Shown here: positions 7,644 through 60,743 of the stretch, piece after piece
Layout: the number at the start of each line of letters is the position of its first letter
Position numbering within the stretch: the first letter of the stretch is position 1
Sequence record: NC_021531.1
DNA length: 64,000 nt
Reading direction: 5' to 3' (one strand)
Position numbers and translations under genes: made by a program
The notes under the pieces: generated by a model
Told to the model about the DNA's origin: nothing
The model's database searches: none
What the model saw: the letters and a program-made list of their open reading frames with translations, nothing else

Positions 7644-7670
7644 GCGTTTATGCCATTGAGCTGGTAAAAA

Positions 7671-7692
7671 ATACGCCGAGAAATCGGCGTAT
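7671..7692 (+). other. GNRA-loop RNA hairpin after the capsid gene
   Basis: atacgccga-gaaa-tcggcgtat, 9-bp perfect stem with no T tract; possibly 3' mRNA stabilising. Confidence 0.6.
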
Positions 7693-7698
7693 GGTATT

Positions 7699-7738
7699 CG
7701 GGAGTCCCTTCGGGGGCTCCCGTATATTTTTATTTTTT
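7699..7738 (+). terminator. intrinsic terminator, UUCG loop
   Basis: cgggagtccc-ttcg-ggggctcccg plus T-rich tract. Confidence 0.9.
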
Positions 7739-7834
7739 ACGTGATGAGTATGTCTTATGCAAGAGAGGTGCAGTGTAAAAAAACATAGACATATGTTATT
7801 TTCGTGACATCCTGCAATAAAAGAGGTCTACGTT

Positions 7835-20571: not shown

Positions 20572-21048
20572 ATGTATCTCATCGATGTTGAACGTGACAA
20601 AATTCCAGTCGGGACATTCCCCGGCCTGAATGAATGGTTAGACGATATTAATTCGGTTCGCTCGACACCGGTAACCTTTACGTTAGCGGTAGAAGACGAT
20701 GTGGCTGTGGGCGTGTGTATCCATGAGCCCGGTCACATTCTGTATCTGATCGTGGCGAAAGACGAACGTCGTCAGGGTTACGGGTCTACGTTATTGAAGA
20801 ATGTAACCAACCTCTCTAAAGGCCCTGTATGGCTCCGTATCGAACCGAATAACTGCGAAGGTATTTGCTTCTTTACCTCTCACGGAGCGGTTATAGACCG
20901 CGTACACGTCGCAGAAGAGGGTGGTGTGTTTCATCGTATGGTACTTGGTGCCAAATCGAAACGCGCAACCCCGCCAGAGGAGACTTCTTTACTACATTAT
21001 TTAGCTAACACACCTGTGTTCGTTTCGGTGGCGGGTAAGATCGTATAA
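20572..21048 (+). CDS. GNAT-family acetyltransferase
   Basis: LYLIVAKDERRQGYGSTLL (acetyl-CoA motif A); LRIEPNN...FFTSHG (motif B). Confidence 0.85.
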   Translation: MYLIDVERDKIPVGTFPGLNEWLDDINSVRSTPVTFTLAVEDDVAVGVCIHEPGHILYLIVAKDERRQGYGSTLLKNVTNLSKGPVWLRIEPNNCEGICFFTSHGAVIDRVHVAEEGGVFHRMVLGAKSKRATPPEETSLLHYLANTPVFVSVAGKIV

Positions 21049-22907: not shown

Positions 22908-22914
22908 GAAATGC

Positions 22915-22952
22915 AGAGAGTATCTTCGGATACTCTCTTTTTCTTTTATTTT
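22915..22952 (+). terminator. intrinsic terminator, UUCG loop
   Basis: agagagtatc-ttcg-gatactctct plus T tract. Confidence 0.9.
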
Positions 22953-22998
22953 TTACAACAGACCTGTTTGATATAGATGAGCAGCGAGGTGAGGTCTA

Positions 22999-23595
22999 AT
23001 GGGAGCCGCAATTCGGATAGCCATTATTGGTTCAAGAAAAACTGACGGGGAAACCATGTCAGAGATGGGGAAGGTCATGGCGGCAATGATTCGTAAGGCC
23101 GTCAGTATGGAGATACCCATCGAAATTACATCCGGAGCTTGTGCGGAAGGACCTGACCAAGTACAACTCATGTTGTCGCGCATATTCGACGACGAGTTGG
23201 TAACGTTCACTGCGTATCTACCGGACGATAAAAAGCTTTGGCTTTCTAAAGTCTATCCTAGGGTTAAGTTTGTTGTGGGAACAGACGATGACCGCCATCG
23301 AGCGACAGTCGAAGAACTGCATCCTGCCCCACAGAACTTAAAAGATTATGCGTACAAACTACACGGGAGGAACTTAGAGATAATAGCTGGCGAGAGTTTA
23401 GGGGACCTCGTCGACGCAGTCTACTTTTCAGCACCTGAGAACGAAAAGGGAATTGTTTCAGGTGGCACAGCAATGGGGGTATCGTACGCACGACAGCGTA
23501 ACGTCCCTACATTCAACGCATCTACACCTGACGGAACTGATGCTTTTATTAGACATGTGCGTACTCTCATCCGTAACTACTCACGGAAAGAGTGA
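22999..23595 (+). CDS. SLOG-superfamily (DprA/Smf/YspA-like) nucleotide-binding protein
   Basis: IAIIGSRK, ITSGACAEGPDQ, HGRN, SGGTAMGVSYA...VPTFN motifs. Confidence 0.75.
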   Translation: MGAAIRIAIIGSRKTDGETMSEMGKVMAAMIRKAVSMEIPIEITSGACAEGPDQVQLMLSRIFDDELVTFTAYLPDDKKLWLSKVYPRVKFVVGTDDDRHRATVEELHPAPQNLKDYAYKLHGRNLEIIAGESLGDLVDAVYFSAPENEKGIVSGGTAMGVSYARQRNVPTFNASTPDGTDAFIRHVRTLIRNYSRKE

Positions 23596-26167: not shown

Positions 26168-26204
26168 AACGAAAATAATCTCAGATATATATTACTTTAG
26201 TGAA
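26168..26204 (+). promoter_or_regulatory. putative early promoter, TATTAC type
   Basis: aacgaaaataatctcagatatatattactttagtgaa, near-identical to 885-920. Confidence 0.75.
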
Positions 26205-29264: not shown

Positions 29265-29741
29265 ATGGGCGAAATACGAGATGTCGAATTTGTGGTGTTT
29301 ACGGATATGGAGAGTGGTCTGTATCGCCAGCTTGAACCGCAACTTTTGAAGTTGCAGGAAGAGTTAACAAAGCAGGAGCTGACATCTAGCTTCGCCGCTT
29401 TAGGGATTGACATGGGTGACTTTACCATCCCGCCCGTGAATCCGGGTTGGTGGAAAGGTTCCCTGTTGGTTGCTTACAATGAAGACCGTGTCCATGGGAT
29501 GCTTAGCATTCGTCCAGACACCTCGGCTGAGCAGGCTAAGATTACCAATGTCATCGTCCATCGAGACTCTCGCGGGTTTGGTATTGCAACGGAGCTTATG
29601 AACCGTGCGACTGAACAAGCAAAGGGTGAAGGGTTTACTACCGTCACTTTGGATGTGATGCACGACAACACAATTGCTGAAGAGTTCTATCGGAAGTTGG
29701 GTTACGCGCAGCTCACCAAAAAGATGTTTAAATACCTTTAA
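29265..29741 (+). CDS. GNAT-family acetyltransferase
   Basis: ITNVIVHRDSRGFGIATELM; LDVMHDNTIAEEFYRKLGY. Confidence 0.9.
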   Translation: MGEIRDVEFVVFTDMESGLYRQLEPQLLKLQEELTKQELTSSFAALGIDMGDFTIPPVNPGWWKGSLLVAYNEDRVHGMLSIRPDTSAEQAKITNVIVHRDSRGFGIATELMNRATEQAKGEGFTTVTLDVMHDNTIAEEFYRKLGYAQLTKKMFKYL

Positions 29742-32000: not shown

Positions 32001-32038
32001 CGTCCTGACTTCGGTCAGGACGTCATCAATTATTTTTT
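32001..32038 (+). terminator. intrinsic terminator, UUCG loop
   Basis: cgtcctgac-ttcg-gtcaggacg plus T-rich tract. Confidence 0.85.
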
Positions 32039-32061
32039 CAGATATATTTTATTTTGATGAA
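32037..32061 (+). promoter_or_regulatory. variant early-type promoter upstream of the tandem-GNAT operon
   Basis: ttcagatatattttattttgatgaa resembles tcagatatatattacttttgtgaa. Confidence 0.5.
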
Positions 32062-32109
32062 AATAACATGGTATCGCCATGCTATGCCGAAGAACCGTGG
32101 AGCTTTAAA

Positions 32110-32967
32110 ATGAAAACCGTGGAATTAACTTTGTCCCATTTACATCGCAGTGAATGGATTAAGCAACTGAATGCGATGTCCGATAAGTACCCTGTTCGTA
32201 AGACGTTACTCGACATGAAAAAGAAAGACGTCAAGATTGCGATACAGGTAACAGACGATAAAAAGCTCCTTGCCTTTTTAGCCATGATGGACGGCGTACA
32301 GGAAGGCGACGCTGTGGGTCTGTGCTTCGGCAATGCGCCAGCCGCTACCGCTGATTTTGCTGGAGAGGCCATGCGCCTTTTCAACTACAAGGTACTGCGT
32401 ATGCAAGTACCACAGAAACACTTCCACCCAGAAGCAGAACGTCTGGGCATCCTGAAGAACTTTACCATGCTGCATCGTCGTGGCGTGTATGACGGTGAAC
32501 CGGTTGAAGATGTTGAACTGGTAAGTGGGGAAATATTCCCGTCAGTAGATGCGCGTGACATTGTTAAGATGCGTGACTTACTGACGTATGCGGTGAGCGT
32601 GGAGGAGAAATTCGACCGCTTAGGCCGTGACCACTTAAGTCACTATAGCAGCCAGCATGTGATTGGGCGTATGGAGAGCTTTGGCTTCTTTGCGCTTGTC
32701 CATCGCTGTGAAGGGGAAGTGGTGGGGATGATTACGGCACAAGCCGGGTCAGAGTTTATAGAAATTAATGGCTTGGCGGTGGCAGCAGAACACCAACGCA
32801 AAGGCATTGGCACCAAACTGGTAAAAGGTCTGATGCATCTGGTCAAAGAGTATTACGACCAGACCGCTGCAATGGTCTTTACCAATAACGTAGGTTCGAT
32901 TGCTCTGTTTGAAAAATTAGGATTCGTTGAAGAGTCCGCCCTATTCATGAAAATCATTGAGGATTAA
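32110..32967 (+). CDS. tandem-GNAT protein (degenerate N-domain, intact C-domain)
   Basis: GGAG SD; C-domain INGLAVAAEHQRKGIGTKLV and TNNVGSIALFEKLGF. Confidence 0.85.
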   Translation: MKTVELTLSHLHRSEWIKQLNAMSDKYPVRKTLLDMKKKDVKIAIQVTDDKKLLAFLAMMDGVQEGDAVGLCFGNAPAATADFAGEAMRLFNYKVLRMQVPQKHFHPEAERLGILKNFTMLHRRGVYDGEPVEDVELVSGEIFPSVDARDIVKMRDLLTYAVSVEEKFDRLGRDHLSHYSSQHVIGRMESFGFFALVHRCEGEVVGMITAQAGSEFIEINGLAVAAEHQRKGIGTKLVKGLMHLVKEYYDQTAAMVFTNNVGSIALFEKLGFVEESALFMKIIED

Positions 32968-32970
32968 TTA

Positions 32971-33828
32971 ATGGAATATGCACTGTTAGATGTCACCAGT
33001 AACGACCCGATGCCGCTGGTACCGGAAGAAATGCAGCATGCTATCGTTGGCATGACAATGCAAGGCGGTAAGGTTTTCGTTGCTGAAGATAAAGAAGCCG
33101 GCGAAGTCCGCGGTATTCTTGGTGTATTCCCTTCCTACATTCCGACTGCGCTGGAAATCGGGATGATGTACACGTTCGGCGATGAGAACGCTATCACGCC
33201 GGAATTCATTAAGCACGTGCTCACCACGCTGGAGTGCGATACGTTACGTTGTCAGATGCGTGATGACCCTTCCCGTGAAATGGTGGCGGCTCTGGGCTTT
33301 AAGCAGGAAACCACTATCTACGCAACTGACCTCGCGGACGGCGACACCGAAGCGGATATCGTGTCTGTTGCCGGTGATAAGTTCGATTACCTGACGCCCG
33401 AGCAGGTTGAGCAGATTCGCATGCTCATTCGCGTCGGTGGGGCTGAAGAAGCTTCCTTTACAGGTAAGCCACATACCCCGTCCGATGAAGACATCGAAAT
33501 CATGCTGCAGACCGTCAAAGATGCACAGGTCGATTTGCTGCTGCGGATTATCGATGAGAAGGTCGTTGGGTTGTTGGCCGTAGAACCCTGCCCGGGCCAT
33601 GCGACTATTACTTGCTTGACGGTACACCCTGAATATCGTTTACAGGGTATCGGTCGTAAGCTGGTGAATCGTGCGGCGATTGAGTACATCCGCAATGACG
33701 GCGAACTGCTACTGGCAAACGTAATGGAATGCACTCCGCATCTGAAAGAGTTTGCCTACTCGATCAAGATGGTGCCGGTTGCTACAGTTCACAAATTCGT
33801 TCTGCTGGAGGAGAAGGAGGCAGCATGA
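32971..33828 (+). CDS. tandem-GNAT protein (degenerate N-domain, intact motif A in C-domain)
   Basis: ITCLTVHPEYRLQGIGRKLV; N-domain EVRGILGVF...ALGFK. Confidence 0.85.
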   Translation: MEYALLDVTSNDPMPLVPEEMQHAIVGMTMQGGKVFVAEDKEAGEVRGILGVFPSYIPTALEIGMMYTFGDENAITPEFIKHVLTTLECDTLRCQMRDDPSREMVAALGFKQETTIYATDLADGDTEADIVSVAGDKFDYLTPEQVEQIRMLIRVGGAEEASFTGKPHTPSDEDIEIMLQTVKDAQVDLLLRIIDEKVVGLLAVEPCPGHATITCLTVHPEYRLQGIGRKLVNRAAIEYIRNDGELLLANVMECTPHLKEFAYSIKMVPVATVHKFVLLEEKEAA

Positions 33829-34712
33829 TTGTTGCAGGACACAAATCGGATCTCCCGTTAGTAGTCTGGGAGAGTGCAAGCAAGAAAATGCCGGATGAGC
33901 TTCTCCGGCAGTCTCGTTTCCCTAACGTCAAGTTCATTATTGAAACCGACGACGACGGGGAAGTGATTGCTTTTGCCGCTGGCGAGTCGACGATGGTTTA
34001 TTACGTCATGGCCGGCATTTACAGTGTCAACGATTCCCCTAGTCCAGAGTTCATGGAAGTGGGGATGCGACAACTCAACCTTCAGGTTGCGACGTTGCCG
34101 GTAGAATCCGATGAGCACGTCTTCGAACAGATGGGCTTTAAAGTAATCCACCGGTTGTACGCCTCGACCCCGGAAGTGCCACTCCAGACTCCTGAGTTTA
34201 TCACGAGTATGGATATGGTGCCGATGATTGATTGGCCAAAGTACGAAATGTTGATGGCAATGGATTTGGAACTGGCGCAGCCGACAGAAAGTGGCCGCGG
34301 TTACGAAAAACCAATGCGTGAGCTTTTCGAGCAGATAAAAGCCAATCCCGAACTGGCGATCGTTAAACTGAAAGACGGGCGACTGCACGGGGTCATGATG
34401 TTGATGAAATCCCTGATGCGCCCCGACGATTGTACTCCGTTGTTGCAGACCGAATTGTACGTCCCTAAGGCGTTACTCTCACTGCCAACGGATGACGGAA
34501 TCAGCAACCCTAATGAGATGCTGCACTACGCAACTCGTCTTTTAGAGTCGCAAAATAAACGAATGGTCATCCAATCTGAAGACCCTGCGGGCGAATTATA
34601 TTTGCGCGATACGCTGAAATACCAATATATTTACAGCACGTGCCAGTATTACGTTCCCGACGAGTCTGAAGTGACCGAACCTGCCACACATGCTATGGAC
34701 GACCCATCCTAA
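33825..34712 (+). CDS. tandem-GNAT-fold protein, probably catalytically degenerate
   Basis: ATGA overlap with GGAGG SD; same architecture (GEVIAFA...EQMGFK; GRLHGVMML...LYV) but no R/QxxGxG motif. Confidence 0.6.
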   Translation: MIVAGHKSDLPLVVWESASKKMPDELLRQSRFPNVKFIIETDDDGEVIAFAAGESTMVYYVMAGIYSVNDSPSPEFMEVGMRQLNLQVATLPVESDEHVFEQMGFKVIHRLYASTPEVPLQTPEFITSMDMVPMIDWPKYEMLMAMDLELAQPTESGRGYEKPMRELFEQIKANPELAIVKLKDGRLHGVMMLMKSLMRPDDCTPLLQTELYVPKALLSLPTDDGISNPNEMLHYATRLLESQNKRMVIQSEDPAGELYLRDTLKYQYIYSTCQYYVPDESEVTEPATHAMDDPS

Positions 34713-34791
34713 GGCAATACCGCTTAATAAGCGGACGTGTGGGAATTTTATTCTCAACCAAGCTTGCGCAATAATCCATTATGGAGTAACC

Positions 34792-35058
34792 ATGAGTCAG
34801 AATATTAACCGCAAAGTCAGTGCCAAGAAAGACGTGTACTATGCCGTAGGTGAAGTCGTTCGCGCGGTAATCGATAAGGAGCAAGTCCTTCACCTCGCAG
34901 TGCCTAGCGAAGTCACACGTGCAGATCGCCGCATGTTGGACAAGCTGGTCATCAAAGCAAAAGCGCGCGACGGTGTTCGTAGCGTCAAGGAAGTCCCGGG
35001 TACTGTGATGGAACTGGTAGACGGTGAGATCCATGTAAGACGTGGCGCGGCGGCCTAA
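34792..35058 (+). CDS. small basic hypothetical protein
   Basis: GGAG SD before ATG 34792. Confidence 0.7.
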   Translation: MSQNINRKVSAKKDVYYAVGEVVRAVIDKEQVLHLAVPSEVTRADRRMLDKLVIKAKARDGVRSVKEVPGTVMELVDGEIHVRRGAAA

Positions 35059-35266
35059 GGCTGTCTACGAGCACCTGAGCGACGACTATACGTCACTCAA
35101 GGGGGTTCGTATGGCTGTATCTATCCTGACGGGTGCATTAATCTCCGCGTTCGTATGGGAATGCTTATCTTGGTTTTTCAAACTGGGTGGTGTTCCCGTA
35201 CTTCAGCGTGTGGGTATGATGGGCATGTGGTTTGGCTTCTACTATGCCCTCTTTCACATTGATTAA
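35042..35266 (+). CDS. small two-TM membrane protein
   Basis: Two hydrophobic segments; start uncertain. Confidence 0.6.
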   Translation: MARRPKAVYEHLSDDYTSLKGVRMAVSILTGALISAFVWECLSWFFKLGGVPVLQRVGMMGMWFGFYYALFHID

Positions 35267-36894: not shown

Positions 36895-37908
36895 ATGAAA
36901 CAGTATCAAGATTTAATGGCTGAAGTCTTTGCGAAAGGTACGCCGAAGAAAGACCGTACCGGTACAGGCACGCTTTCTATCTTCGGCCACCAGATGCGTT
37001 TCAACTTGCAAGAAGGTTTCCCGCTGGTAACGACCAAGCGTTGCCACCTGCGCTCTATTATCCATGAACTGCTGTGGTTCCTGAAAGGCGACACCAATAT
37101 CCAGTACCTGAAAGATAATGGTGTAACCATTTGGGACGAATGGGCGGACAAAAATGGCGACCTCGGTCCGGTATACGGTAAGCAGTGGCGGGCATGGACT
37201 GCGCATGATGAGGTCCATACTGGCAATAAGAAAATTATTGCTGAGATGGAAGAAGATGGGTGGGAAGAAGCGGGTTATCGCGAAGCTTCGATGCTGCTGA
37301 CTAAAGATATCGACCAGATTGCCAAAGTCATGGGCCAGTTGAAAAACGACCCGGATAATCGGCGTATCATCGTTAGTGCATGGAACGTAGCTGACCTTGA
37401 CGATATGGCCTTAGCTCCTTGCCACGCCTTCTTCCAGTTTTATACTCGTGAAATGTCCTTGGATGAGCGTGTACAGTGGGCGGAAGAAAACGACAACGAG
37501 CTGTGGTCTGATTACATCCACGCCACGTTTGTGGATGAAAACACCCGTCTCGGGTGGCTGGATAAAGCCGGGGTTCCTACGCGTAAGTTGTCTTGTCAGC
37601 TCTATCAGCGTAGTGCCGACGTGTTCTTGGGTGTGCCGTTTAACATCGCGTCGTATGCTCTACTGATTCACATGTTTGCACAGCAGGCGAATATGGCGGT
37701 GGGCGATTTCGTCTGGACCGGCGGTGATGTGCATCTGTATTCTAACCATCTGGAACAGGCACGTACTCAGTTAGGTCGTACTCCGCGTGCGTTGCCTAAG
37801 CTGATTATCAAACGTAAGCCGGACTCTATCTTCGACTATAAGTTCGAAGATTTTGATATCGAAGGCTACGACCCACACCCGGCTATTAAAGCACCGGTGG
37901 CGATATGA
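36895..37908 (+). CDS. thyA: thymidylate synthase with two insertions
   Basis: [60 protein letters not shown]-terminus. Confidence 0.97.
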
Positions 37909-44934: not shown

Positions 44935-45438
44935 ATGACAACTGTTTTCGTTTGCAGTGACTTTATTGTCGCAGACCGTGTATTGACGCGAGGCGACGAA
45001 ACGATACACGCTGATTTTAAGAAGCTACATCTCAATCGTGAGAAAACGATTGCTATCGCGGCAGTGGGTAACGTGAACTTTCGTAATCACCACAAAACTG
45101 TGGTTGACCATTTCTTCAAGGTGGTGGAGCAACGCTACACGGGGATTCCATCGCCCATGTTGTCTAAGAACGATGTGGCGGTGTTGGGCGACCTCCAGTT
45201 ATACGTTCTCACTGCACTGGATGTGTTTGTGATTACCCGTGACCAGAACGTCCAATGGGTTGGGGACGGCATGGTGGAAGGAGCAGGTACTGGATACCCG
45301 CTGGCTTGTGCAGCGTACTCACTCGGTGCTAAACCTGAGCATATCGTGCCACTGACTGCGAAGATTGACCCAATGTCGTCCAGTAAGTTCAACATCATCT
45401 ATCGCCGCGAACTCAAACGCATTACCCCGAGGAAATAA
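44935..45438 (+). CDS. hslV: HslV/proteasome-beta-like Ntn-hydrolase peptidase
   Basis: M-T-T N-terminus (Thr1 nucleophile), IVADR, conserved Lys (FKKL), AAVGN, GAGTG..LA.AA, A.IDPMSS. Confidence 0.7.
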   Translation: MTTVFVCSDFIVADRVLTRGDETIHADFKKLHLNREKTIAIAAVGNVNFRNHHKTVVDHFFKVVEQRYTGIPSPMLSKNDVAVLGDLQLYVLTALDVFVITRDQNVQWVGDGMVEGAGTGYPLACAAYSLGAKPEHIVPLTAKIDPMSSSKFNIIYRRELKRITPRK

Positions 45439-47741: not shown

Positions 47742-49805
47742 ATGAAAGGTCCGAACGGAATTATGTCTCCCGTTGAGATGGTAAGCGTTTTTGATAAGTC
47801 AGTGCGTGGGCAGGAGGAGGCGAAACGTCAATTGTCTATTGCGCTCTTTAACCGTCATCGACGTGCAAAGCTGTCTGCAGAAGACCGCAAGTACGTCAAG
47901 AAACAGAACATCCTCATCGAAGGGCCAACTGGTTCTGGTAAGACGGCGTTAATGCGTGTACTGCGCGAAGACTTCGGTCTGCCGGTGTTGGAAGTTGACA
48001 TTACGGAATATAGCGAAGCAGGTTATCACGGTAAGTCAGTTGACGACATGATTAAAGAGTTGCAGGGTATCGATTTCCGTGTGCCGAAGTGGTTTAACGA
48101 GAAGCCGCCGGTTAAGAAAGCTGAACCTGTTAAGCTTGAAAGCAACAATGACAGCTTCGACCCAACGTTCGTTCGCGATAAAAAGACGGCGCGTGAAATC
48201 TTCATTGCGATGCGTATTATGCTCATCGGCATGGTGGGTGCACGGGTTTATCCGATGCATGTTTTCAGTGACCCTAACGCAGGCTCTATGCTACATCGTA
48301 CCGTGGAAGAAAACGCCGAAGAAAATCCAGATGAACTGATTCGTTTCTTCCGTCGCGGTGTTGATTTGGTCATGTCCAAAGATATCCCGTTGACCGGTAA
48401 GTTCATGGAGCTGGCTAACCACACCGCCGAGTCACTGATGACCATGGACGAAATCGGCAACCCTGAAGCGGAAATCACCGACGAGTTCTTTGCCAAGTTC
48501 CTACTGCCGCAGCAAACACTGGTTGGGATGGTCAGTTCATTAGTGAACCTTGACGTAGCAGACTACAACGCGATTTGGGATATCAAAGTCCCTTATCAGG
48601 AAATCAACGAGTGGCCGAGCAGTGATTTAGCTGGCGACAAGTCAGGTTTCTATCGTGAGCGTTTGAAAGCAGCCATGGTTGCGTATTTCTTCCGTGCGCT
48701 CATCGCGGGTCTGATTAAGACCGGTGTCAGCAAAGTAGAAGACCACGCTAGCAAGACAATGGCCATGCAGCGTTATAACGGCAAAGACATGGCGAAAGAA
48801 GTCGCGTCGATGTTCGGGTTGGGCTTTGATGCTGCAGCGCAGTCTCAGGAGAAACTGAAAGAGCAGGTTCGCGCAGGTATGCCTTGTATGGCGCAGGAAC
48901 GTGTTATTCAACTGGGCCGTAGTTTCCGGGCGTGGACTAACCAATTGTCCAAACTCAAGATGGTTGGTGAGTCGAAGGTTATCTTCCCGGCGAAGATGAC
49001 TGCCGCGTGGGAAGAGTTGAAAGAAATGTCTTTCGATGATTTCTGGAAGCTGGCCACTGCAGAGATTGCCCAACGCAGCGCTAAACAGATTCGTGAAGAC
49101 GTTCAACACGCGTCATTAATCTTTGCACCGAATGCGGACACGCCTGATTTTGGTGGGATGACATTCCGTCCAATGGGTCGTCCAATGGGTGGTTTGGGCA
49201 TTCCGGGACTGGGCCACATCTTTGGCATGGGTGGTGGGGCATCAGTGTCAGGCGATAGCAAAGAGTTCCTTGAGAACTTTGCTGTGGTCTTCATTGATGA
49301 AATCGATAAACTGATTCAGGAACCGGGCCGTTCGGGAGATGTTTCTCGAATGGGTGTGCAACGTGGGCTGTTAAAACTGGTAGAAGGGGGTGTGTACGCA
49401 GGTATTGATACATCCAACATTCTGTTTGTTGGTGCAGGCGCGTTTTCCGGGACTTCCCCCGCCAAGCTGTTGCCTGAACTCGTTGGTCGCTTCCCAATTC
49501 GCGCACGTCTTAAAGCATTGACGAACGAAGACTATGTGGCCATCTGTAAACTGGAGCGTTCTCCGTTCAACATGTATTGTAAGATGCTGGGAACGGATGA
49601 GGTGAAGGTCAAATACGACGAAGATACATTCGAATACATTGCTCAGTTAACCGAGCTTGAGAACCAAGAGTTCAATCTTGGCGCTCGTCGTATTGAAGGT
49701 ATTATCGAACGTGTTTTTGCGCCGGCTATGTTCGAGCCGGAGAAATATTTAGAACACGGATTTGATATTCGTGGTGAAACACTCCGTAAAACCTTAAGAG
49801 GCTAA
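47742..49805 (+). CDS. hslU: HslU (ClpY)-like AAA+ unfoldase with expanded I-domain
   Basis: GQEEAKR..SIALFNRHRR, NILIEGPTGSGKT, VFIDEIDK, VSRMGVQRGLLKLVEG, TSNILF...GAF, LLPELVGRFPIR, NLGARR. Confidence 0.88.
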   Translation: MKGPNGIMSPVEMVSVFDKSVRGQEEAKRQLSIALFNRHRRAKLSAEDRKYVKKQNILIEGPTGSGKTALMRVLREDFGLPVLEVDITEYSEAGYHGKSVDDMIKELQGIDFRVPKWFNEKPPVKKAEPVKLESNNDSFDPTFVRDKKTAREIFIAMRIMLIGMVGARVYPMHVFSDPNAGSMLHRTVEENAEENPDELIRFFRRGVDLVMSKDIPLTGKFMELANHTAESLMTMDEIGNPEAEITDEFFAKFLLPQQTLVGMVSSLVNLDVADYNAIWDIKVPYQEINEWPSSDLAGDKSGFYRERLKAAMVAYFFRALIAGLIKTGVSKVEDHASKTMAMQRYNGKDMAKEVASMFGLGFDAAAQSQEKLKEQVRAGMPCMAQERVIQLGRSFRAWTNQLSKLKMVGESKVIFPAKMTAAWEELKEMSFDDFWKLATAEIAQRSAKQIREDVQHASLIFAPNADTPDFGGMTFRPMGRPMGGLGIPGLGHIFGMGGGASVSGDSKEFLENFAVVFIDEIDKLIQEPGRSGDVSRMGVQRGLLKLVEGGVYAGIDTSNILFVGAGAFSGTSPAKLLPELVGRFPIRARLKALTNEDYVAICKLERSPFNMYCKMLGTDEVKVKYDEDTFEYIAQLTELENQEFNLGARRIEGIIERVFAPAMFEPEKYLEHGFDIRGETLRKTLRG

Positions 49806-52711: not shown

Positions 52712-53512
52712 ATGAGGTCAGGCACATTAGAGAATTTAATCTCGCTAATTAATCTCGCTAACTCAGCTGAAACACCCATCGCACTTGAAGATGTCGACGT
52801 TTCAGCACCGTACGAGGTTAACAAAGACGGCTGTAATACCGAGGTAGAAGTTACCGTTAAGCCGTCCTATTTCCCTCTGCGTGGGAAGCAGACGTTTCGT
52901 TATAATCGTCTCCCCATTGGTACAGTGGTAAAAGGTGATTTGGAGCTGTACATGGACCCTGAGATGCGGAACAGTTACGACATGATTCCGTTCTTAAACC
53001 AACAGCTCGGTATTGAACTGACTGAAAGCGACGTCATTAACGACCCGGTGGTGGGCGAGCAGCATACCTTCCGTGCTGCGTCCACATCTTACCAATGGAA
53101 CGACATGGCGTTGGTGTTGTTAAAGCAAGCGACACCGTTGGATGAGGTTATCCTCGCGACGGAGCTTGACGGCTTGAAATATCCTGACACGCAAGAACCA
53201 AAAGGGCAGGCATCAATTTATTCCTACGGGGTGGATTGCTCGCACATCGCATCGTTCCTTTGGGTAATGGCAGCAGGTATTGATTTTGACGACACGGCGT
53301 TGGCGGTGGAGTTCAACAAAGTTGTCCCTGAAGTATGGGTTTCAGTTCCCGAGCCGGCTCCTTGGAACCTGCGTGACTCGAAGTGTGTCTACGAAGGGTT
53401 AACCTCCAGACTGCCCGGTGCCAATACTGACTTCCAACGCGTAGTGTCCATTGAGTTAGGTGCGCTTTGCACGAACTTTGCAGGCACTCTTAACCTACAT
53501 TACAACCCGTGA
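52712..53512 (+). CDS. tail/baseplate paralogue family protein 1
   Basis: Family pattern LIN..N / NT.V / Y.RL / LN...G..L...D / L..V..LDGL.YP / Y.YG.D / G.L.LHYN; start at 52712 rather than 52604. Confidence 0.75.
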   Translation: MRSGTLENLISLINLANSAETPIALEDVDVSAPYEVNKDGCNTEVEVTVKPSYFPLRGKQTFRYNRLPIGTVVKGDLELYMDPEMRNSYDMIPFLNQQLGIELTESDVINDPVVGEQHTFRAASTSYQWNDMALVLLKQATPLDEVILATELDGLKYPDTQEPKGQASIYSYGVDCSHIASFLWVMAAGIDFDDTALAVEFNKVVPEVWVSVPEPAPWNLRDSKCVYEGLTSRLPGANTDFQRVVSIELGALCTNFAGTLNLHYNP

Positions 53513-53521
53513 GGTTAGAAG

Positions 53522-54364
53522 ATGGCTAAGTACACTAAAACCTCCGACGCAATGTTGCTCGACGCGATTAATATCGAGAACAACCTGCAAAATGACCCGC
53601 TGACGTGGAATCAGATTGCAGCGGGTTTCCCAGAGAAGGTTACCACCCCAGGCGCTGACCGTAACACCCGTCTCTTGATTTACGGGTTAAAACAAGGTGG
53701 CTATAAAGGTACGGTAACTTTGCAATACGACCGTATTTCGCTGCCGGAAATCTTCCGCAATGTTACCCCTGTGGTGGTAACCGAGCCTGTCAATTTACTC
53801 AGCCAATTGTTACCTCAACTCAATAAAGCCTACGGGCTGTCCATTACTGCCGACGATATTATCGAGCAGTCTGTTGCTGGGTTGGGTGACGATTTCCTGA
53901 TTAATGTGCAGCTCCGCGCCGGGTGTTTAGCATGGGAAGGGGATTTCGAATTACGCTTTACCAAATTCCGTCCGAAATTAAAAGATATCATCGCAGACGC
54001 TGTGCTGGATGTTATCGTTGCACCGTTCCCGATGGGGGCGAAGCCTCGTGCTGAGTATGTGGCCTACGGGTACGATTACTCCACGATGGGAGAAACGTTT
54101 AAAACGTGGGCTATTAATCGGACATTGACGCAAAACGATATTGATGAACTGAACGAAACCGTGCAGGGGTTAAAGCTGGTCAACAAGACTGGTGCCAACG
54201 CCGCTGCCGGGGAGATAGCGTTGTCGGGGGCGAAAGTCACTACGATTACCAACGTTACTGAAGGCAGTTTGTTTAACGTCGCGTACGAGAAGGCAATCGT
54301 AATTACGCTGGCCACAACCAGTAACTACGAGGGTCAGCTTATCATCCACTACTCATCGCTTTAA
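53522..54364 (+). CDS. tail/baseplate paralogue family protein 2
   Basis: Same pattern, ends GQLIIHYSSL. Confidence 0.75.
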   Translation: MAKYTKTSDAMLLDAINIENNLQNDPLTWNQIAAGFPEKVTTPGADRNTRLLIYGLKQGGYKGTVTLQYDRISLPEIFRNVTPVVVTEPVNLLSQLLPQLNKAYGLSITADDIIEQSVAGLGDDFLINVQLRAGCLAWEGDFELRFTKFRPKLKDIIADAVLDVIVAPFPMGAKPRAEYVAYGYDYSTMGETFKTWAINRTLTQNDIDELNETVQGLKLVNKTGANAAAGEIALSGAKVTTITNVTEGSLFNVAYEKAIVITLATTSNYEGQLIIHYSSL

Positions 54365-54372
54365 GGATTGCT

Positions 54373-55218
54373 ATGCCTATCTTAAAACGACCCGAGCAGT
54401 TAATAGTCGATCGGATTAACCTTGAGAATAAGACCGACTTAAAGCTTACCGACGTAACTTTATTTACGCCGCGTACGCCAACCACTGCTGACGAGATACA
54501 GACCGCGCAAGGTCGTAACACGGTCGTCCGTATCGCTGCGACACCGCTGGCTAATGCGACCGGGGCGACGTTTGTGTACTATAACCGCCTTGACTTCACC
54601 GCAATGTTCACTGATGCCGATGGTATTCAACCGTTGGTGGTTCCAGTAAACTTTGACACGGTGTTTACGGCGTGGGATGTTGTGTCGTTCATTAACCAGT
54701 ATTACGGGCTGATGCTCGAGACGAAAGATGTGTTGGAAGAGACCATCAATCGTGCTGAATGGACGGTGCAGCTGAAGGCCCATCCTGAGTCCCTTGGCTG
54801 GATTGGCGAAGTGCCTGTTAAACTGGTGCGTGGCGATGCGTTAATTCCAACGAACTTCACCAATGTGCAAATCGCGCCATATGCCTACCCGCACTTCAAC
54901 ACGAAGGTCGGACAGGGTGCCATTTATTCGTACCCGTGGCGTTTTGATGAGTTCGCGGCGGAGCTGCGAGATATGGGCATTACAACCAACGAAGTACGCT
55001 TGGCGCAAATGCTCAAGAAAGTCACTGCGGACAGCTGGATGGTGTACCGTAGTCCGGTTGATTTCAATCTGAAAGAAGCACGGGTCGTGTATAACGGCAA
55101 AAACAGCCGTGACCTACCGACCAACCCCTCAGTTGACAACGTGATGATTATCGAGTTGTCGCTGTACTGTCTCAACTTTGGCGGGCGCTTGTACCTGCAT
55201 TACAATGACCCTGAATAA
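54373..55218 (+). CDS. tail/baseplate paralogue family protein 3
   Basis: Same pattern, ends GRLYLHYNDPE. Confidence 0.75.
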   Translation: MPILKRPEQLIVDRINLENKTDLKLTDVTLFTPRTPTTADEIQTAQGRNTVVRIAATPLANATGATFVYYNRLDFTAMFTDADGIQPLVVPVNFDTVFTAWDVVSFINQYYGLMLETKDVLEETINRAEWTVQLKAHPESLGWIGEVPVKLVRGDALIPTNFTNVQIAPYAYPHFNTKVGQGAIYSYPWRFDEFAAELRDMGITTNEVRLAQMLKKVTADSWMVYRSPVDFNLKEARVVYNGKNSRDLPTNPSVDNVMIIELSLYCLNFGGRLYLHYNDPE

Positions 55219-55231
55219 GGAATATCGTTAA

Positions 55232-56152
55232 ATGAAACCGTTAAACAAAACTGCCGACTTGCTGGTACTGGACCTCATCAATGAGGCCAACGTTGATGCG
55301 AACCTCGACCTGTCCAAAGTCGTTCTGCTTCCTCCTGTTGATAACGACGAAGAAGACGCGATTCGTAACTCCAAGCTGACCGTTAAAGCCCGTAAAAACT
55401 CCGGCTTTATCAAAACACAAGACGTGACCTACGACCGTCTGGTGGGTGAGGCTCTGTTCCGTAATGTGGCGGCGTATCTGGATGTGAAACTGCCAACTAA
55501 GTCAGAAGACCTGTTGGCGACGCTGAACAAACAATACGGCCTGAAGATTCAGCCGGAGGACATTGTCTCTGCGCCGATTGCTCCGGATACCAACCCACCG
55601 CTGGAAGACCCGGAAGCTGATGCACCGCCTGCCGTACAGCACACCATCACCTTCAAAGACGATTGCTATGCGTTTAAAGGTGCTATCAATGTGCTTATCG
55701 GTGAGCGTCCTCAGGTAGGTGAGCGCCTGTCTCTGGTCATCACCAAAACTAAACTGGATGGTATCGCATACCCGGATGGTCACAGCGCCAGCAAAGGTCA
55801 GGCGTACATCTACTCGTACGGTACCGACTGCACTGCGATTCAGGGCTTCCTGAGCAAACTCGCAGTGGGTACGGCGTTGGACGACACCGCCACAGCTACC
55901 GAGCTGAACAAAGTCTTCCCGGAAGAGTGGGTGGCGGTAGAAGGTACTGCCGACTACAACCTGAAAGGGGCAACTGTAGTCTACGCGGGTTCTACTACTG
56001 AAACTGTTACAGACCCGAAAGATTCCGGGTCTACCATTCAGCAGGATGTGCCGGGTGCCGATATGAGCTACAACTCTATCGTCAAGCTGAAACTCGACGA
56101 TTCCAACTGCGCCAACTTCCAGGGCGAATTGTTCCTGCACTTTAACGCGTAA
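55232..56152 (+). CDS. tail/baseplate paralogue family protein 4
   Basis: Same pattern, ends GELFLHFNA; strongest codon bias in the array. Confidence 0.75.
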   Translation: MKPLNKTADLLVLDLINEANVDANLDLSKVVLLPPVDNDEEDAIRNSKLTVKARKNSGFIKTQDVTYDRLVGEALFRNVAAYLDVKLPTKSEDLLATLNKQYGLKIQPEDIVSAPIAPDTNPPLEDPEADAPPAVQHTITFKDDCYAFKGAINVLIGERPQVGERLSLVITKTKLDGIAYPDGHSASKGQAYIYSYGTDCTAIQGFLSKLAVGTALDDTATATELNKVFPEEWVAVEGTADYNLKGATVVYAGSTTETVTDPKDSGSTIQQDVPGADMSYNSIVKLKLDDSNCANFQGELFLHFNA

Positions 56153-56160
56153 CAACACCC

Positions 56161-56197
56161 CGGGGGAGATCACTCCCCCGGTTCATCTGCTATTTTT
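56161..56197 (+). terminator. hairpin/terminator inside the paralogue array
   Basis: cgggggag-atca-ctcccccg followed by a delayed T tract. Confidence 0.7.
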
Positions 56198-56215
56198 GAT
56201 TAGAAGGATGGTATT

Positions 56216-57235
56216 ATGCCAAGTCCATATGCCAAGCCCTCGCAGCAGTTATTTTGGGATTTGGTAAACCGTTCGAATCCTCAGCTTAAGATTCCTTTGT
56301 CAGACGACAACTGCGTTATTTACGGCTACCCTGTGAGTGTTACCCCGAGTGCTGCGACGGGTATGCGTAACACCCGCATTCGTTTGTATGCCAAAGTCGG
56401 CAAAGGGTATAAAGGGGAAATATTCCTTTACTACAACCGCCTGAGCATCACCTCGTTCTTTACGGGCATAGGCACAGTCGTGACCAATTACGCGGCCTAC
56501 AACTATCTCCTGGTTCTGGCGGCTTTCAATAATACTTACGGATTATCCCTCACCAGCACTGACCGAACTTATAACACAAGCCGGAACCCGCCGCCGTGGA
56601 CACTGGGGATGACCATCCCAGACATTATGCGATATGACGGGAGTTACTCATTAGGTAGCTCGGGTGCTGATAACACCATGCTCTTTACCACCTGTCCAGA
56701 ATCACTATGCTGGATTGGCGGTCAAAATATAAACATTAGCCGTATCCGCGGCAACCCTGACTTCGGAACCTTGATTACCAAGCCTGAGATTGCGCAGATG
56801 CGTAAAGTCCCAGTAATGCCGGAAGGTACGTATGACACCGCCCTGCTGACGTGGGGGTACGACTTCACGGATAATTTACCGACGATCTCAAACTTTTTGG
56901 GCAACCCATCGAGCCGCACGTATCAAGTCAACCTCGCCGCAATGCTGGCACAAGTGACGGGTCTACCGTTCGCATGGGGCAGCGGCAACGCCGCCGGCGC
57001 GTTAGACCTGCAAGGGTTTACGTATAACAATTACCAGCAGGCGATTGGGTCGAGGGCGCATTACAATTCCGACGATTTCAACCGGTGTCTGGTAATATAT
57101 CGTGATTATTCCGCAGCGTCCCCACCGCTAGGTTCGGGCTGGTCTACCGAAGGGTGGCAGGGGATGAGTCCTGACCAAGACGATGTGAATGTCACGTTAT
57201 TCCGCCACGCTGTTTTCATGCACTACAACGTCTAA
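56216..57235 (+). CDS. tail paralogue family protein 5 (divergent, with insertions)
   Basis: Family N-domain and TWGYDFT retained; extra loops; ends VFMHYNV. Confidence 0.75.
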   Translation: MPSPYAKPSQQLFWDLVNRSNPQLKIPLSDDNCVIYGYPVSVTPSAATGMRNTRIRLYAKVGKGYKGEIFLYYNRLSITSFFTGIGTVVTNYAAYNYLLVLAAFNNTYGLSLTSTDRTYNTSRNPPPWTLGMTIPDIMRYDGSYSLGSSGADNTMLFTTCPESLCWIGGQNINISRIRGNPDFGTLITKPEIAQMRKVPVMPEGTYDTALLTWGYDFTDNLPTISNFLGNPSSRTYQVNLAAMLAQVTGLPFAWGSGNAAGALDLQGFTYNNYQQAIGSRAHYNSDDFNRCLVIYRDYSAASPPLGSGWSTEGWQGMSPDQDDVNVTLFRHAVFMHYNV

Positions 57236-57249
57236 CCGGAGTAAAAAGA

Positions 57250-58143
57250 ATGTCACGTAACCTTTTCTATTACACCGGATTAGAACGTGTGATGCGAGCA
57301 ATCTCCTTGGCGAATGGGCTTAACCCCACCGTAACCGTCGATAACTGCATCATTTCAAAACCTGCGCCGGTGGCAGGGAGCTGGAAAGAAGTGACCACGA
57401 CCAAAAACACCGTGGTGAAAATTTCCCAAACAGTTCCGGCCGTCACGTACAACGGTAAAAACTGGGTTGTGTACGACCGCGTCCCTATTTCTGCGATGCT
57501 TAATCGTTTACCTGACCCGACGGTTCTACGAGTTGACAATCCGAAAACCGTAAAAGATCTACTGCGCGCAATTAACCGACGTTGGGGTATCGGGTTAGAA
57601 GACCGCGATATTATTGACGACCCGATCGTTTTGGACAGCGATGGGAAAGCGACGGTCACGATGATGATTCATCCGGACAGTTATCTCTACACGGGCAGTT
57701 TCACGTTCAGTGTGGTACCGGGCGATGCCATGTTAAGTGAGAACGTTACCACAACGGCACAAGCTGGCTTTACTTATCCTGACGGTAATATCGACTATGT
57801 CGGCGGTCAGAAGGGTTATGCTCAGCCATACAGCTACAGTTTTGACTTCACTTTAAAAGAGACAGAGCTGCGTGCGCTGAAAGTCGGTACCGACCTCACT
57901 GGTCTGGCGGATATCCTGACCTATATCACGAAGACAACATGGACAGACTCGGCATCTGATGCCGATAACGCCTACACGGTTACGGGTGCTGAGATTCTGT
58001 ACAACGGACTGAACAGTACGGACTACCCAACCAGTTCGGCCTTTAAATATCTGGTGATTGTGAAGATGGGTCCAAAGTGTAAGCTGCAAGGGAAGATGTA
58101 CCTGCAGTTCAACGACAAGGATGACCCGAACTCCCCTAACTAA
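57250..58143 (+). CDS. tail paralogue family protein 6
   Basis: Same pattern, ends GKMYLQFNDKDDPNSPN. Confidence 0.75.
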   Translation: MSRNLFYYTGLERVMRAISLANGLNPTVTVDNCIISKPAPVAGSWKEVTTTKNTVVKISQTVPAVTYNGKNWVVYDRVPISAMLNRLPDPTVLRVDNPKTVKDLLRAINRRWGIGLEDRDIIDDPIVLDSDGKATVTMMIHPDSYLYTGSFTFSVVPGDAMLSENVTTTAQAGFTYPDGNIDYVGGQKGYAQPYSYSFDFTLKETELRALKVGTDLTGLADILTYITKTTWTDSASDADNAYTVTGAEILYNGLNSTDYPTSSAFKYLVIVKMGPKCKLQGKMYLQFNDKDDPNSPN

Positions 58144-58154
58144 CGGAGGCTGCT

Positions 58155-58973
58155 ATGGCTTTGTATAGCCAGTCTCAGCAACAGTATCTGGTGGATGCTA
58201 TTAACGCCCAAAACCCGGGCGCTATTGACTTACTGACGTTGAAGAACTGCTTCATCGGTAAGCCTAAAGCTATCACCCAGAACTTTCCGACCGACCCGAA
58301 TACCGAAATCACGGTACGTGGTCGTCCGGGGAGCGGGTACAACGGTTCGCAAACGTTCCGTTACACTCGCTTGTCGCTGAGTGATTTGTTCAAAAACTTT
58401 ACGCCTGTGATTACCATGCCGGGTATCGGCACAACGTTACAAGCGGTAGCCAACATTAACGGGCGGTACGGGTTAAACCTTTTGCCTGAAGATGTGGTGT
58501 CGTATTACTTGTACCGCAACTCTTTAAGCCCGTTGCGGGTTTACGGAACCAGTTTGCAGTACACTGGTAGCGTGAATATCAAATACGTGCCGGGCCCGTA
58601 CAGCTTGGAAGAACTGGTGGTAAACAACATCTTAAATGAGTTGAACCACCCGATTGACCCTGACGACGGGAAAAAATGCGGGACAATGCTTGCCTACGGT
58701 GTGGACTTTACTGATGAGTACCAGCTACTCAGCTCGTTTACCGCCGGACCGTTGGGTACTGGAGATAACTTCACCTCTGGCCGTAGTCAGGCGCTGGTTG
58801 ACATGATGGAATCACACGGACTCCCACGTTGGGACTTTACCGGCGCTCGTGTACAAGTGAAAACCACTGCCAATGAAACCCGTGCCGATAAGCGATTCGA
58901 CCGGGTACTTGTTATTACGCTAGTTAACGACCCCGACGTGGCAGGCGATTGGCTACTCCACTACAATATTTAG
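58155..58973 (+). CDS. tail paralogue family protein 7
   Basis: Same pattern, ends GDWLLHYNI. Confidence 0.75.
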   Translation: MALYSQSQQQYLVDAINAQNPGAIDLLTLKNCFIGKPKAITQNFPTDPNTEITVRGRPGSGYNGSQTFRYTRLSLSDLFKNFTPVITMPGIGTTLQAVANINGRYGLNLLPEDVVSYYLYRNSLSPLRVYGTSLQYTGSVNIKYVPGPYSLEELVVNNILNELNHPIDPDDGKKCGTMLAYGVDFTDEYQLLSSFTAGPLGTGDNFTSGRSQALVDMMESHGLPRWDFTGARVQVKTTANETRADKRFDRVLVITLVNDPDVAGDWLLHYNI

Positions 58974-58985
58974 TAGGAAACGAAA

Positions 58986-59864
58986 ATGGCAATTTATCAA
59001 CCATCGAAAGAGGTGCTGTTGGCCGCTGTTAATGCTCAGAACTCCTTGAACATTAAGCTGACCGACATCACCTATAGTGCCCCCAAAGACATTCGCGGGA
59101 CTGACCAGGCAACCACAACCCAGCGTAACACTCTGGTAAAAATCACCGCCACACCGACCGGGTCGTGGACAGGTAAAAAGAACCTCTTCTATACCCGTCT
59201 GAACATTGAAGATATCCAACAGCTGATCGGTGACACCTTGCAGGTTGGCGGTGTTGAAAAGCTTCACGATGCGCTGATTGGGCTGAACAACCGTTACGGT
59301 TTTGCGTTTGAGCCCGAAGATTTGGTGAATACCGATTTGGAGTGGGAGCCTGACGGTCAAACAGGTTTCTTAGACGTCACCGCCGAGGCTGACTCGCTCG
59401 GTTGGATCGGCACTGCCCGCTTTAAACTGGTGAAAGGTGATGAGTCGCTGCAAACTGCGGTTACCACGACCACCCTGAACGGCCTGAAGTATCCGAACGG
59501 CGATATGGGCTCTGTCAACCAGACGGCTATCCTTGCCGAGGTTTACTCCTATCCGTTCGACTTCACCACACAGCGCGATGCGTTGCTGGTGTTCGGGACG
59601 GGCGTGTTGGCAGCAGGCGCTACCCTCAACAACCTTGTCGGTATCCTCAACCCAATTACGGGTACCACGTGGGTGGCGTCGAACGCAGCATCGTGGGGTC
59701 TGTTGGGTGCGGAAATCACTTACAACGGCCTCAACAAAGCCGAGTTCCCAACCAACAGCAAGTACAAGTACGCGATGGCAATCAAACTGCCAGCTACTAC
59801 CACTAACATCAAGGGCACGCTGTACGTCCAGTATAACGACCCTGACGACCCGAACGAGGTGTAA
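58986..59864 (+). CDS. tail paralogue family protein 8
   Basis: Same pattern, ends GTLYVQYNDPDDPNEV. Confidence 0.75.
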   Translation: MAIYQPSKEVLLAAVNAQNSLNIKLTDITYSAPKDIRGTDQATTTQRNTLVKITATPTGSWTGKKNLFYTRLNIEDIQQLIGDTLQVGGVEKLHDALIGLNNRYGFAFEPEDLVNTDLEWEPDGQTGFLDVTAEADSLGWIGTARFKLVKGDESLQTAVTTTTLNGLKYPNGDMGSVNQTAILAEVYSYPFDFTTQRDALLVFGTGVLAAGATLNNLVGILNPITGTTWVASNAASWGLLGAEITYNGLNKAEFPTNSKYKYAMAIKLPATTTNIKGTLYVQYNDPDDPNEV

Positions 59865-59867
59865 TCC

Positions 59868-60695: not shown

Positions 60696-60700
60696 CCGTG

Positions 60701-60730
60701 GGGAGAGGGGAAACCCTCTCCCTCTTTTTT
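60701..60730 (+). terminator. intrinsic terminator, GAAA loop
   Basis: gggagaggg-gaaa-ccctctccc plus T tract. Confidence 0.85.
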
Positions 60731-60743
60731 GAAGGGTATTGCA

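Follow-up and report, generated by a model that had tools for sequence, protein, structure and literature searches.

Tandem-repeat GNATs and the CR5 locus

Tandem-repeat GCN5-related N-acetyltransferases (GNATs) are proteins with two GNAT-fold lobes in one chain. In those that have been characterised, the C-terminal lobe alone is catalytic, and the cleft between the two lobes takes the acceptor (PMC10936415). Our search of the literature found nothing on tandem GNATs in jumbo phages. The subject of this analysis is a run of three consecutive genes of Cronobacter phage CR5, namely CR5_099, CR5_100 and CR5_101 (genes 1, 2 and 3, together the triad), which are predicted to encode three diverged tandem GNATs. 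The third is a candidate pseudoenzyme that is conserved. These genes lie in a 64-kb stretch of DNA, hereafter the window, which is identical (100%) to bases 62001-126000 of CR5 (NC_021531.1 / JX094500), and all positions below are those of the window unless stated otherwise.

CR5 is a jumbo myovirus of 224 kb in the genus Derbicusvirus, and its kin include Salmonella phage SPN3US and, at a greater distance, phiKZ. Phages of the CR5, SPN3US and phiKZ group encode both virion and non-virion multisubunit RNA polymerases (PMC5105663). The triad is laid out as follows.

32110-32967, plus strand: gene 1, CR5_099, 285 amino acids, "putative GCN5-related N-acetyltransferase 1" in GenBank
32971-33828, plus strand: gene 2, CR5_100, 285 amino acids, "N-acetyltransferase 2" in GenBank
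33825-34712, plus strand: gene 3, CR5_101, 295 amino acids, "hypothetical protein" in GenBank

An earlier note on this DNA had described three tightly coupled genes of about 285-295 amino acids with a 3-nucleotide gap and an ATGA overlap, and direct reading of the sequence bears out these bounds, lengths and junctions. The TAA stop codon of gene 1 is followed by 3 nucleotides and then the ATG of gene 2, and genes 2 and 3 overlap in ATGA. Genes 2 and 3 each have a Shine-Dalgarno-like sequence within the preceding gene, with GAGGA or AAGGAGG shortly before their starts. Position 32037, where the operon had been said to begin, is the first base of a promoter-like motif, and no gene starts there.

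Graded loss of motif A

The acetyl-CoA pyrophosphate-binding loop of GNATs is recognised by motif A, for which the pattern [QR]xxGx[GA] was used. Gene 1 contains a single copy at residues 229-234 (nucleotides 32794-32811), and gene 2 contains a single copy at residues 223-228 (nucleotides 33637-33654), both in the C-half; in gene 2 the region past the motif has diverged. At the homologous position, motif A is absent from every N-half, in the triad as well as in its relatives. Gene 3 has it in neither lobe. The same series is found across the relatives, with motif A in 5/5 copies of gene 1, 3/4 copies of gene 2 and 0/5 copies of gene 3, the gene 2 orthologue on metagenomic contig L007 having lost the first glycine. 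These alignments indicate that the graded loss of the motif is real across relatives.

The Pfam model PF00583 (Acetyltransf_1) matches residues 189-272 of gene 1 with 55.9 bits and residues 175-245 of gene 2 with 37.7 bits, both above the cut-off of 20.7 bits. The match in gene 2 covers profile positions 23-93 of 116, leaving the C-terminal part of the domain uncovered. No half other than these two C-halves reaches the cut-off of a Pfam GNAT model, and the N-halves go undetected. Gene 3 reaches no Pfam gathering cut-off, matches no Pfam GNAT model at E values up to 1 and no NCBIfam model, and a profile of six gene 3 sequences matches no sequence in the PDB at E values up to 10.

The earlier note had assigned motif A to the C-half of the first two genes and had found none in gene 3, which the pattern scan confirms, and had read this as a graded loss of catalytic motifs, a gradient also seen in the relatives. 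That genes 1 and 2 have motif A in one half, the C-half, is ordinary, because it is the general rule of tandem GNATs (PMC10936415). The unusual part of the locus is the conserved dead paralogue and not the motif confined to one lobe.

Paralogy and predicted fold

Genes 1 and 2 align in register by BLASTP over 168 residues (E 8e-8), their orthologue profiles match with a probability of 97% in hhalign, and both belong to one PHROG of unknown function, phrog_8663. Pairwise matches between genes 1 and 3 are weak and always in register. Between their profiles, hhalign gives 86% (E 5e-6) over 164 columns in register when the six-sequence gene 3 alignment that includes Phobos and L007 is used, and 40% with a narrower alignment. 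Judged by these comparisons, the paralogy of the three genes is beyond chance. In addition, the N-half profile of the family matches its C-half profile element by element (68% probability, E 5e-5), which in sequence terms is a trace of internal duplication.

AlphaFold2 models were made for genes 1 and 3. Their input alignments held 20-24 sequences, all from phage relatives, and the answer is therefore not borrowed from bacterial tandem GNATs. The model of gene 1 has a mean predicted local distance difference test score (pLDDT) of 91.7 and a predicted template modelling score (pTM) of 0.84, and that of gene 3 has a mean pLDDT of 86.8 and a pTM of 0.74. In both, each half shows the GNAT order of strands and helices, so that two GNAT-fold lobes per chain are predicted, and in gene 1 the N-lobe (about residues 1-134) is degenerate and the C-lobe canonical. 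For both models at least the top 20 PDB matches are tandem-repeat GNATs, aligned over about 300-345 columns (gaps included) with a Foldseek probability of 1.00. Among them are VipF, CBG, MAB_4324, MshD, GlmA, 3TT2, 3IWG and 3FRM, with E values of 3e-14 to 1e-9; the top match of gene 1 is VipF (E 3e-14), and the best matches of gene 3, again tandem GNATs, reach 9e-11.

Support for the fold of gene 2 comes from the model of its Derbicus orthologue in BFVD, a set of viral models, which the gene 3 model matches with an E value of 1e-14 and a TM-score of 0.60. The gene 3 model also matches the BFVD models of its own Phobos orthologue and of GNATs from SPN3US-type phages. The two GNAT-like halves per protein that had been read from the letters are thus borne out by the predicted folds together with the match between N- and C-half profiles.

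Conservation of the three genes

All three genes are under purifying selection. The proportions of nonsynonymous and synonymous differences (pN/pS) are 0.149/0.722 for gene 1 (CR5 against EarlPhillipIV, Nei-Gojobori), and in the same pair of phages 0.342/0.688 for gene 2 and 0.151/0.700 for gene 3. The pN and pS values are similar to those of neighbouring genes, and the ratios are only rough because synonymous sites are near saturation. Orthologue identities are 77, 65 and 61% for gene 1, 48, 40 and 35% for gene 2, which evolves fastest of the three, and 75, 44 and 37% for gene 3.

Across six orthologues, with identities down to 37%, gene 3 retains 78 invariant columns. Among them are a strictly conserved loop that lies between helices one and two of the C-lobe, and stretches on later helices and strands. 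The loop that replaces motif A is variable and unconstrained among the orthologues. By this pattern of substitution gene 3 is not decaying and is conserved under purifying selection, and, with a predicted tandem-GNAT fold and motif A in neither lobe, it is a candidate pseudoenzyme.

Distribution and relatives

The triad is found in CR5, EarlPhillipIV, Derbicus, pEa_SNUABM_38 and Phobos, and also on the 14-kb metagenomic contig L007, where its neighbours are unchanged. The earlier note had proposed a check of synteny, and order, spacing and presence of the three genes prove to be conserved in every complete relative found. The gap and the overlap are 3 and 4 nucleotides in EarlPhillipIV and 4 and 4 nucleotides in Phobos. 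A further contig, L008 (3.6 kb), carries a gene resembling gene 1 (23% identity) followed directly by a motif-less gene of 285 amino acids.

Word-indexed sequence searches returned orthologues only. An exhaustive profile search of 1.84 billion representative proteins gave seven below 1e-10, all of them triad orthologues or paralogues of these phages, and scans of IMG/VR and JGI metagenomes with the gene 3 profile revealed no loci beyond CR5, Derbicus and Phobos. As far as these searches reach, the triad does not occur outside Derbicusvirus and a single metagenomic contig. Tandem GNATs of about 290 amino acids from Firmicutes were considered as wider relatives and rejected, since they match through their GNAT domains only. 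The named cluster members come from Lactococcus, Fictibacillus and Dethiothermospora, and several of the proteins tested were unnamed metagenomic ones. Both of their halves align to the phage C-half, and they are therefore uninformative about the phage N-half.

SPN3US-type phages (Seoulvirus, Machinavirus, Wellingtonvirus and others) have a single homologue, with 56 records matched, 6 of them through short fragments only. This protein, represented by SPN3US YP_009153398, STsAS_085, Caitlin gp115 and Kwan gp131, is 314-333 amino acids long, is colinear with gene 1 apart from a C-terminal tail, and is encoded, as the triad is, downstream of thymidylate kinase. It matches gene 1 with a BLAST E value of about 1e-10 and has motif A at the same place. 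The gene order continues with a Dam-type methyltransferase and then hypothetical proteins of 245-276 amino acids, which have no detectable sequence similarity to gene 2 or gene 3; hhalign comparison with the profiles of genes 1 and 3 stays below 1%. The gene 3 model matches BFVD models of 262-276 and 213-215 amino acids from Kwan, phiEaH2 and Huxley, with E values of 1e-12 to 1e-5. The Kwan entries of 276 and 215 amino acids fit gp133 and gp127 by protein length and phage name only; gp133 is encoded directly after the methyltransferase and is the orthologue of SPN3US gp160. These model matches suggest, short of proof, that one motif-A tandem GNAT accompanied by degenerate copies of the same fold is an older and wider feature of the group.

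Separately, many Salmonella enterica assemblies, of serovars Newport, Enteritidis, Muenchen and Infantis, have contigs of about 224 kb that encode proteins at least 90% identical to gene 2; CR5 itself was isolated on Cronobacter. CR5-like jumbo phages seem to travel with sequenced Salmonella isolates, as a carrier state or as contamination.

Transcription signals

The following features flank the triad.

32001-32038, plus strand: terminator-like hairpin with a 9-bp stem, a 4-nucleotide loop and a T-rich tail, closing the thymidylate kinase gene
32037-32061, plus strand: promoter-like motif, a variant of the recurrent early-type motif of CR5, adjoining the hairpin
32062-32109, plus strand: leader, conserved when four upstream regions are aligned, with Shine-Dalgarno-like GTGGAG at 32097-32102
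34720-34753, plus strand: possible weak terminator after gene 3, read by eye, with a 6-bp stem and a T-rich stretch 12 nucleotides downstream

In the alignment of four upstream regions, the hairpin, the promoter-like motif and the 48-nucleotide leader are all kept in EarlPhillipIV, Phobos and contig L007. A terminator scan does not call the hairpin at 32001-32038, because its T-run begins more than 2 nucleotides past the stem; nor does it call the stem at 34720-34753. The start of gene 1 is set at 32110. An in-frame ATG at 32068 was considered and rejected because it is out of frame in Phobos.

A relaxed pattern search finds the early-type motif at 4 sites in the window against 0.06 expected, all on the plus strand and intergenic. 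Over the whole CR5 genome there are 11 sites, again all on the plus strand and between annotated genes according to the gene tables, and 2 of the 11 precede genes for RNA polymerase subunits. The copy at 32037-32061 differs at 4 of 24 positions from two exact copies (897-920 and 26181-26204). An early promoter consensus has been published for OBP, N1M2, 201phi2-1 and phiKZ (PMC7058600, Table 2), and the core and flanks of the CR5 motif are similar to it. The site before gene 1 agrees with the early promoter class of jumbo phages: it is AT-rich and recurrent, has a TATATTAC-like core and stands ahead of an operon. The variant early-promoter motif that the earlier note had seen upstream is thereby upheld, and it recurs within CR5. 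Early promoters of phiKZ are transcribed by the injected virion polymerase (PMC13282480), and because the CR5 motif resembles the published consensus, it is reasonable to infer that the Derbicus-type triad is expressed early. A scan for sigma-70 promoters gave a count not above that of shuffled sequence.

The upstream signals differ in the SPN3US-type phages. Ahead of the single homologue, the genomes of SPN3US, STsAS, Caitlin and Kwan have a terminator and a conserved T-rich motif unlike the early-type one. The early-type motif of SPN3US stands before another gene, about 1.5 kb upstream of the single tandem-GNAT gene. The timing of expression may thus differ between genera.

Two further observations concern these signals. 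Another pattern that recurs, in which a terminator hairpin leads into a T-run with TTTTTAC at its end, stands before several genes; it occurs in the window at 7644-7834 and 22908-23076 and also upstream of the single tandem-GNAT gene at four loci of SPN3US-type phages; this may be another promoter class. A copy of the early-type motif at 223922-223940 of the CR5 record lies some 50 bp short of the end of this linear record and faces CR5_001, which fits a genome that is circularly permuted or arbitrarily opened.

Neighbouring genes

Two small genes for single-domain GNATs of 158 amino acids each, CR5_094 (29265-29741) and CR5_082 (20572-21048), lie up to 12 kb upstream of the triad, bringing the GNAT-fold genes in this stretch of CR5 to five. 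The small candidate GNATs of Caitlin and phiEaH2 have spermidine N-acetyltransferase activity, and SPN3US YP_009153389 is without it (PMC9992855). In position, SPN3US YP_009153389 corresponds to CR5_094.

The triad stands between genes for thymidylate kinase and thymidylate synthase, and a DNA hypermodification pathway was considered on this ground. The idea is unsupported and was rejected because the synthase is a genuine ThyA, scoring 481 bits where the cut-off is 405, the kinase is only weakly dTMP kinase-like, and no other pathway gene is nearby. The synthase, CR5_107 (36895-37908), has 337 amino acids and matches the 264-amino-acid ThyA model in three separate stretches, which implies one or more sizeable insertions compared with bacterial ThyA.

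Elsewhere in the window, ten consecutive genes annotated "virion structural protein", CR5_134-CR5_143 (52712-62060), encode proteins of about 265-440 amino acids each. They resemble a paralogue array of the kind seen in the head-protein family of SPN3US, which has 17 members (PMC5105663). An HslV-like peptidase (CR5_121, 44935-45438) and an HslU-like ATPase (CR5_127, 47742-49805) are encoded a few kb apart. Annotation gaps at 1931-2070 and 35042-35266 contain small open reading frames whose hydrophobic products resemble membrane proteins, and the second of these matches the position of a small annotated gene in EarlPhillipIV.

Proposed mechanism and alternative explanations

The explanation that we favour is that the triad forms a transcription unit of its own in CR5, bordered upstream by the terminator hairpin and preceded by a variant of the early-type promoter, and encodes three diverged paralogues of a phage-specific tandem-GNAT family. 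Taken jointly, with all of its parts, this explanation has in our estimate an even chance of being correct. By analogy with characterised tandem GNATs, the product of gene 1 would be an acyl-CoA-dependent N-acyltransferase in which the C-lobe catalyses and the dead N-lobe helps to form the acceptor cleft between the lobes. Gene 2 would be a copy that is weakened or in the course of change. A non-catalytic role as a binder, with an acceptor-type binding surface retained, is proposed for gene 3 and in part for gene 2; such a binder would work together with gene 1 or on its own. Closest in sequence to the C-lobe, all with low scores, are protein N-terminal and lysine acetyltransferases (archaeal Nat SSO0209, Naa30, RimI and GCN5) and AAC(3)-I. 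Because of these relatives there is a weak lean towards a protein or amine acceptor, which would be met early in infection. The C-terminal stretch of gene 1, which ends in LGF, looks canonical by eye, with Phe in place of the usual Tyr.

Several observations weigh against this explanation. The Phe is found in every aligned gene 1 orthologue at the position, before LGF, of the usual Tyr general acid, and catalysis by gene 1 is for this reason not guaranteed. The TM-scores of the structural matches are modest (0.3-0.55) and the root-mean-square deviations large, which we ascribe to a different angle between the lobes, and the models were built on shallow alignments of 20-24 sequences. The promoter copy at 32037 deviates from the consensus of CR5 itself at 4 of 24 positions. 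In SPN3US, STsAS, Caitlin and Kwan the orthologue follows a different upstream motif, so early expression is not something that the family as a whole has conserved.

The earlier note had gone further and proposed a heteromeric acetyltransferase complex. In such a complex gene 1 would catalyse and gene 3, perhaps also gene 2, would be a dead scaffold or targeting subunit, with targets in host defence, transcription or translation. The translational coupling through the 3-nucleotide gap and the ATGA overlap, which is kept in relatives, speaks for this arrangement, as do the strict co-occurrence of the three genes and the purifying selection on a dead paralogue whose conserved loops lie in the region of the GNAT acceptor site. 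The motif-A copy of SPN3US-type phages is likewise encoded near proteins of a probably degenerate tandem-GNAT fold; there, however, a DNA methyltransferase gene separates the partners. In the literature consulted, heteromers have not been described for characterised tandem GNATs (PMC10936415), and a role against defence systems finds no PADLOC match and no AcrVA5-like match in sequence, profile or fold searches. We regard the complex as doubtful. Alternatively, the three proteins could be independent products of tandem duplication that then diverged towards other acceptors or towards loss, with gene 2 on its way to inactivity and gene 3 serving as a binder or decoy in its own right. The very unequal orthologue identities of the three genes and the loss of motif A in one gene 2 lineage agree with such independence, and paralogue arrays are common in this phage group, as in the SPN3US head family of 17 members (PMC5105663) and the ten-gene array of CR5 at 52712-62060. 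Yet order, spacing and presence of all three genes are kept in every complete relative found, and full independence is in our view unlikely.

It is also conceivable that gene 3 is not dead and works with another donor than acyl-CoA. Aminoacyl-tRNA, the donor of Fem-type transferases, would be one example, and motif A would then not be needed. Its fold matches do include FemX (6.5e-7), Sbb17 (3e-7) and Sba18, with E values of 3e-7 to 1e-6, the latter two being aminoacyl-tRNA-dependent peptide synthases. These matches nevertheless rank below about two dozen chains of acetyl-CoA-using tandem GNATs and have lower TM-scores (0.30-0.32), gene 3 has no sequence similarity to FemX, Sbb17 or Sba18, and the loop in place of motif A varies among its orthologues. 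A Fem-type gene 3 is highly improbable.

A bolder reading joins gene 3 with the SPN3US-type proteins of probably degenerate tandem-GNAT fold. Each would be a pseudoenzyme specificity subunit paired with an active paralogue, giving a modular acetyltransferase that can be re-aimed at host proteins. This is a speculation that we think quite unlikely to hold, and if it were true, the array of dead copies would record an arms race over targets.

The GNAT annotation of genes 1 and 2 was already known, as was the fold itself. What is new is the placement of gene 3 as a candidate tandem-GNAT pseudoenzyme, the graded erosion across relatives, the putative promoter and terminator of the unit, and a pattern that probably extends more widely among SPN3US-like phages. 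Biocontrol and therapy agents are being developed from jumbo phages akin to phiKZ and SPN3US, most of whose genes are without known function; here a predicted fold and a probable chemistry are assigned to three genes, one of them previously unannotated. A dead GNAT paralogue is kept under selection beside a probably active one, in a pattern that appears to span, with greater divergence, several SPN3US-like genera. If the dead copies turn out to be partners in targeting or regulation, phages would here show a new mode of organising the acetylation of proteins or metabolites. Otherwise, the triad would provide a clean natural series for the decay of an enzyme into pseudoenzymes.

Comparison with known systems

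The triad proteins are GNATs at the level of the superfamily, and their predicted fold places them among the tandem-repeat GNATs. They reach no curated family cut-off below the level of the GNAT superfamily. The MshD equivalog model (NCBIfam TIGR03448, at least 163.1 bits) gives 21.1 bits with gene 1, 25.1 bits with gene 2 and no match with gene 3, and the RimI and AAC(3)-I equivalog models, with cut-offs of 86.4 and 200 bits, give 31.3 and 32.5 bits with gene 1. Eis has a third, C-terminal domain and about 400 amino acids, compared with two lobes and 285-295 amino acids in the triad, and Eis chains first appear at rank 33 among the fold matches of gene 3, with target-normalised TM-scores of 0.21-0.23. 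PADLOC gives no match for the triad.

The closest likeness is to VipF (6WQB, 7WX5), MshD (1OZP, 2C27), the glucosamine N-acetyltransferase GlmA (5KF1), CBG (2WPW) and MAB_4324 (7Q3A), which share with the triad two lobes in a chain of about 285-340 amino acids. As in tandem-repeat GNATs generally, the catalytic signature, judged by the motif in genes 1 and 2, is found in the C-terminal lobe only. Identity to the solved tandem-repeat GNATs in structural alignments is just 10-16%, however, and full-length sequence searches against the PDB gave single-domain matches to the C-half only. The N-lobes of VipF and MshD still bind acetyl-CoA (PMC10936415), whereas those of the triad lack motif A entirely. 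In the literature consulted, no known tandem GNAT is reported to be encoded in an operon of three paralogues of which one lacks the motif altogether.

Among phage proteins, Rac of phiKMV-like phages, which acetylates the alpha subunit of the host RNA polymerase, and AcrVA5, which acetylates Cas12a, resemble the triad in being phage-encoded GNATs, and both put a host machine out of action. Both Rac and AcrVA5 are single-domain GNATs. Neither was returned by the triad searches, AcrVA5 being absent from the 38 PDB sequence matches (E up to 1), from the profile search and from the top 50 fold matches, and a relation beyond the GNAT superfamily is not supported. The GNATs of jumbo phages are generally predicted to act on host proteins, as Rac does (PMC7824862). 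Chimallin, which forms the shell of the phage nucleus, has a C-terminal domain of GNAT fold that has lost the active-site residues and has a non-catalytic role (PMC9365700). It differs from the triad proteins in being much larger and of another architecture, and it is not among the listed matches of either model. Even so, chimallin provides a precedent, in the same broad group of phages, for a dead GNAT that is kept for binding or assembly.

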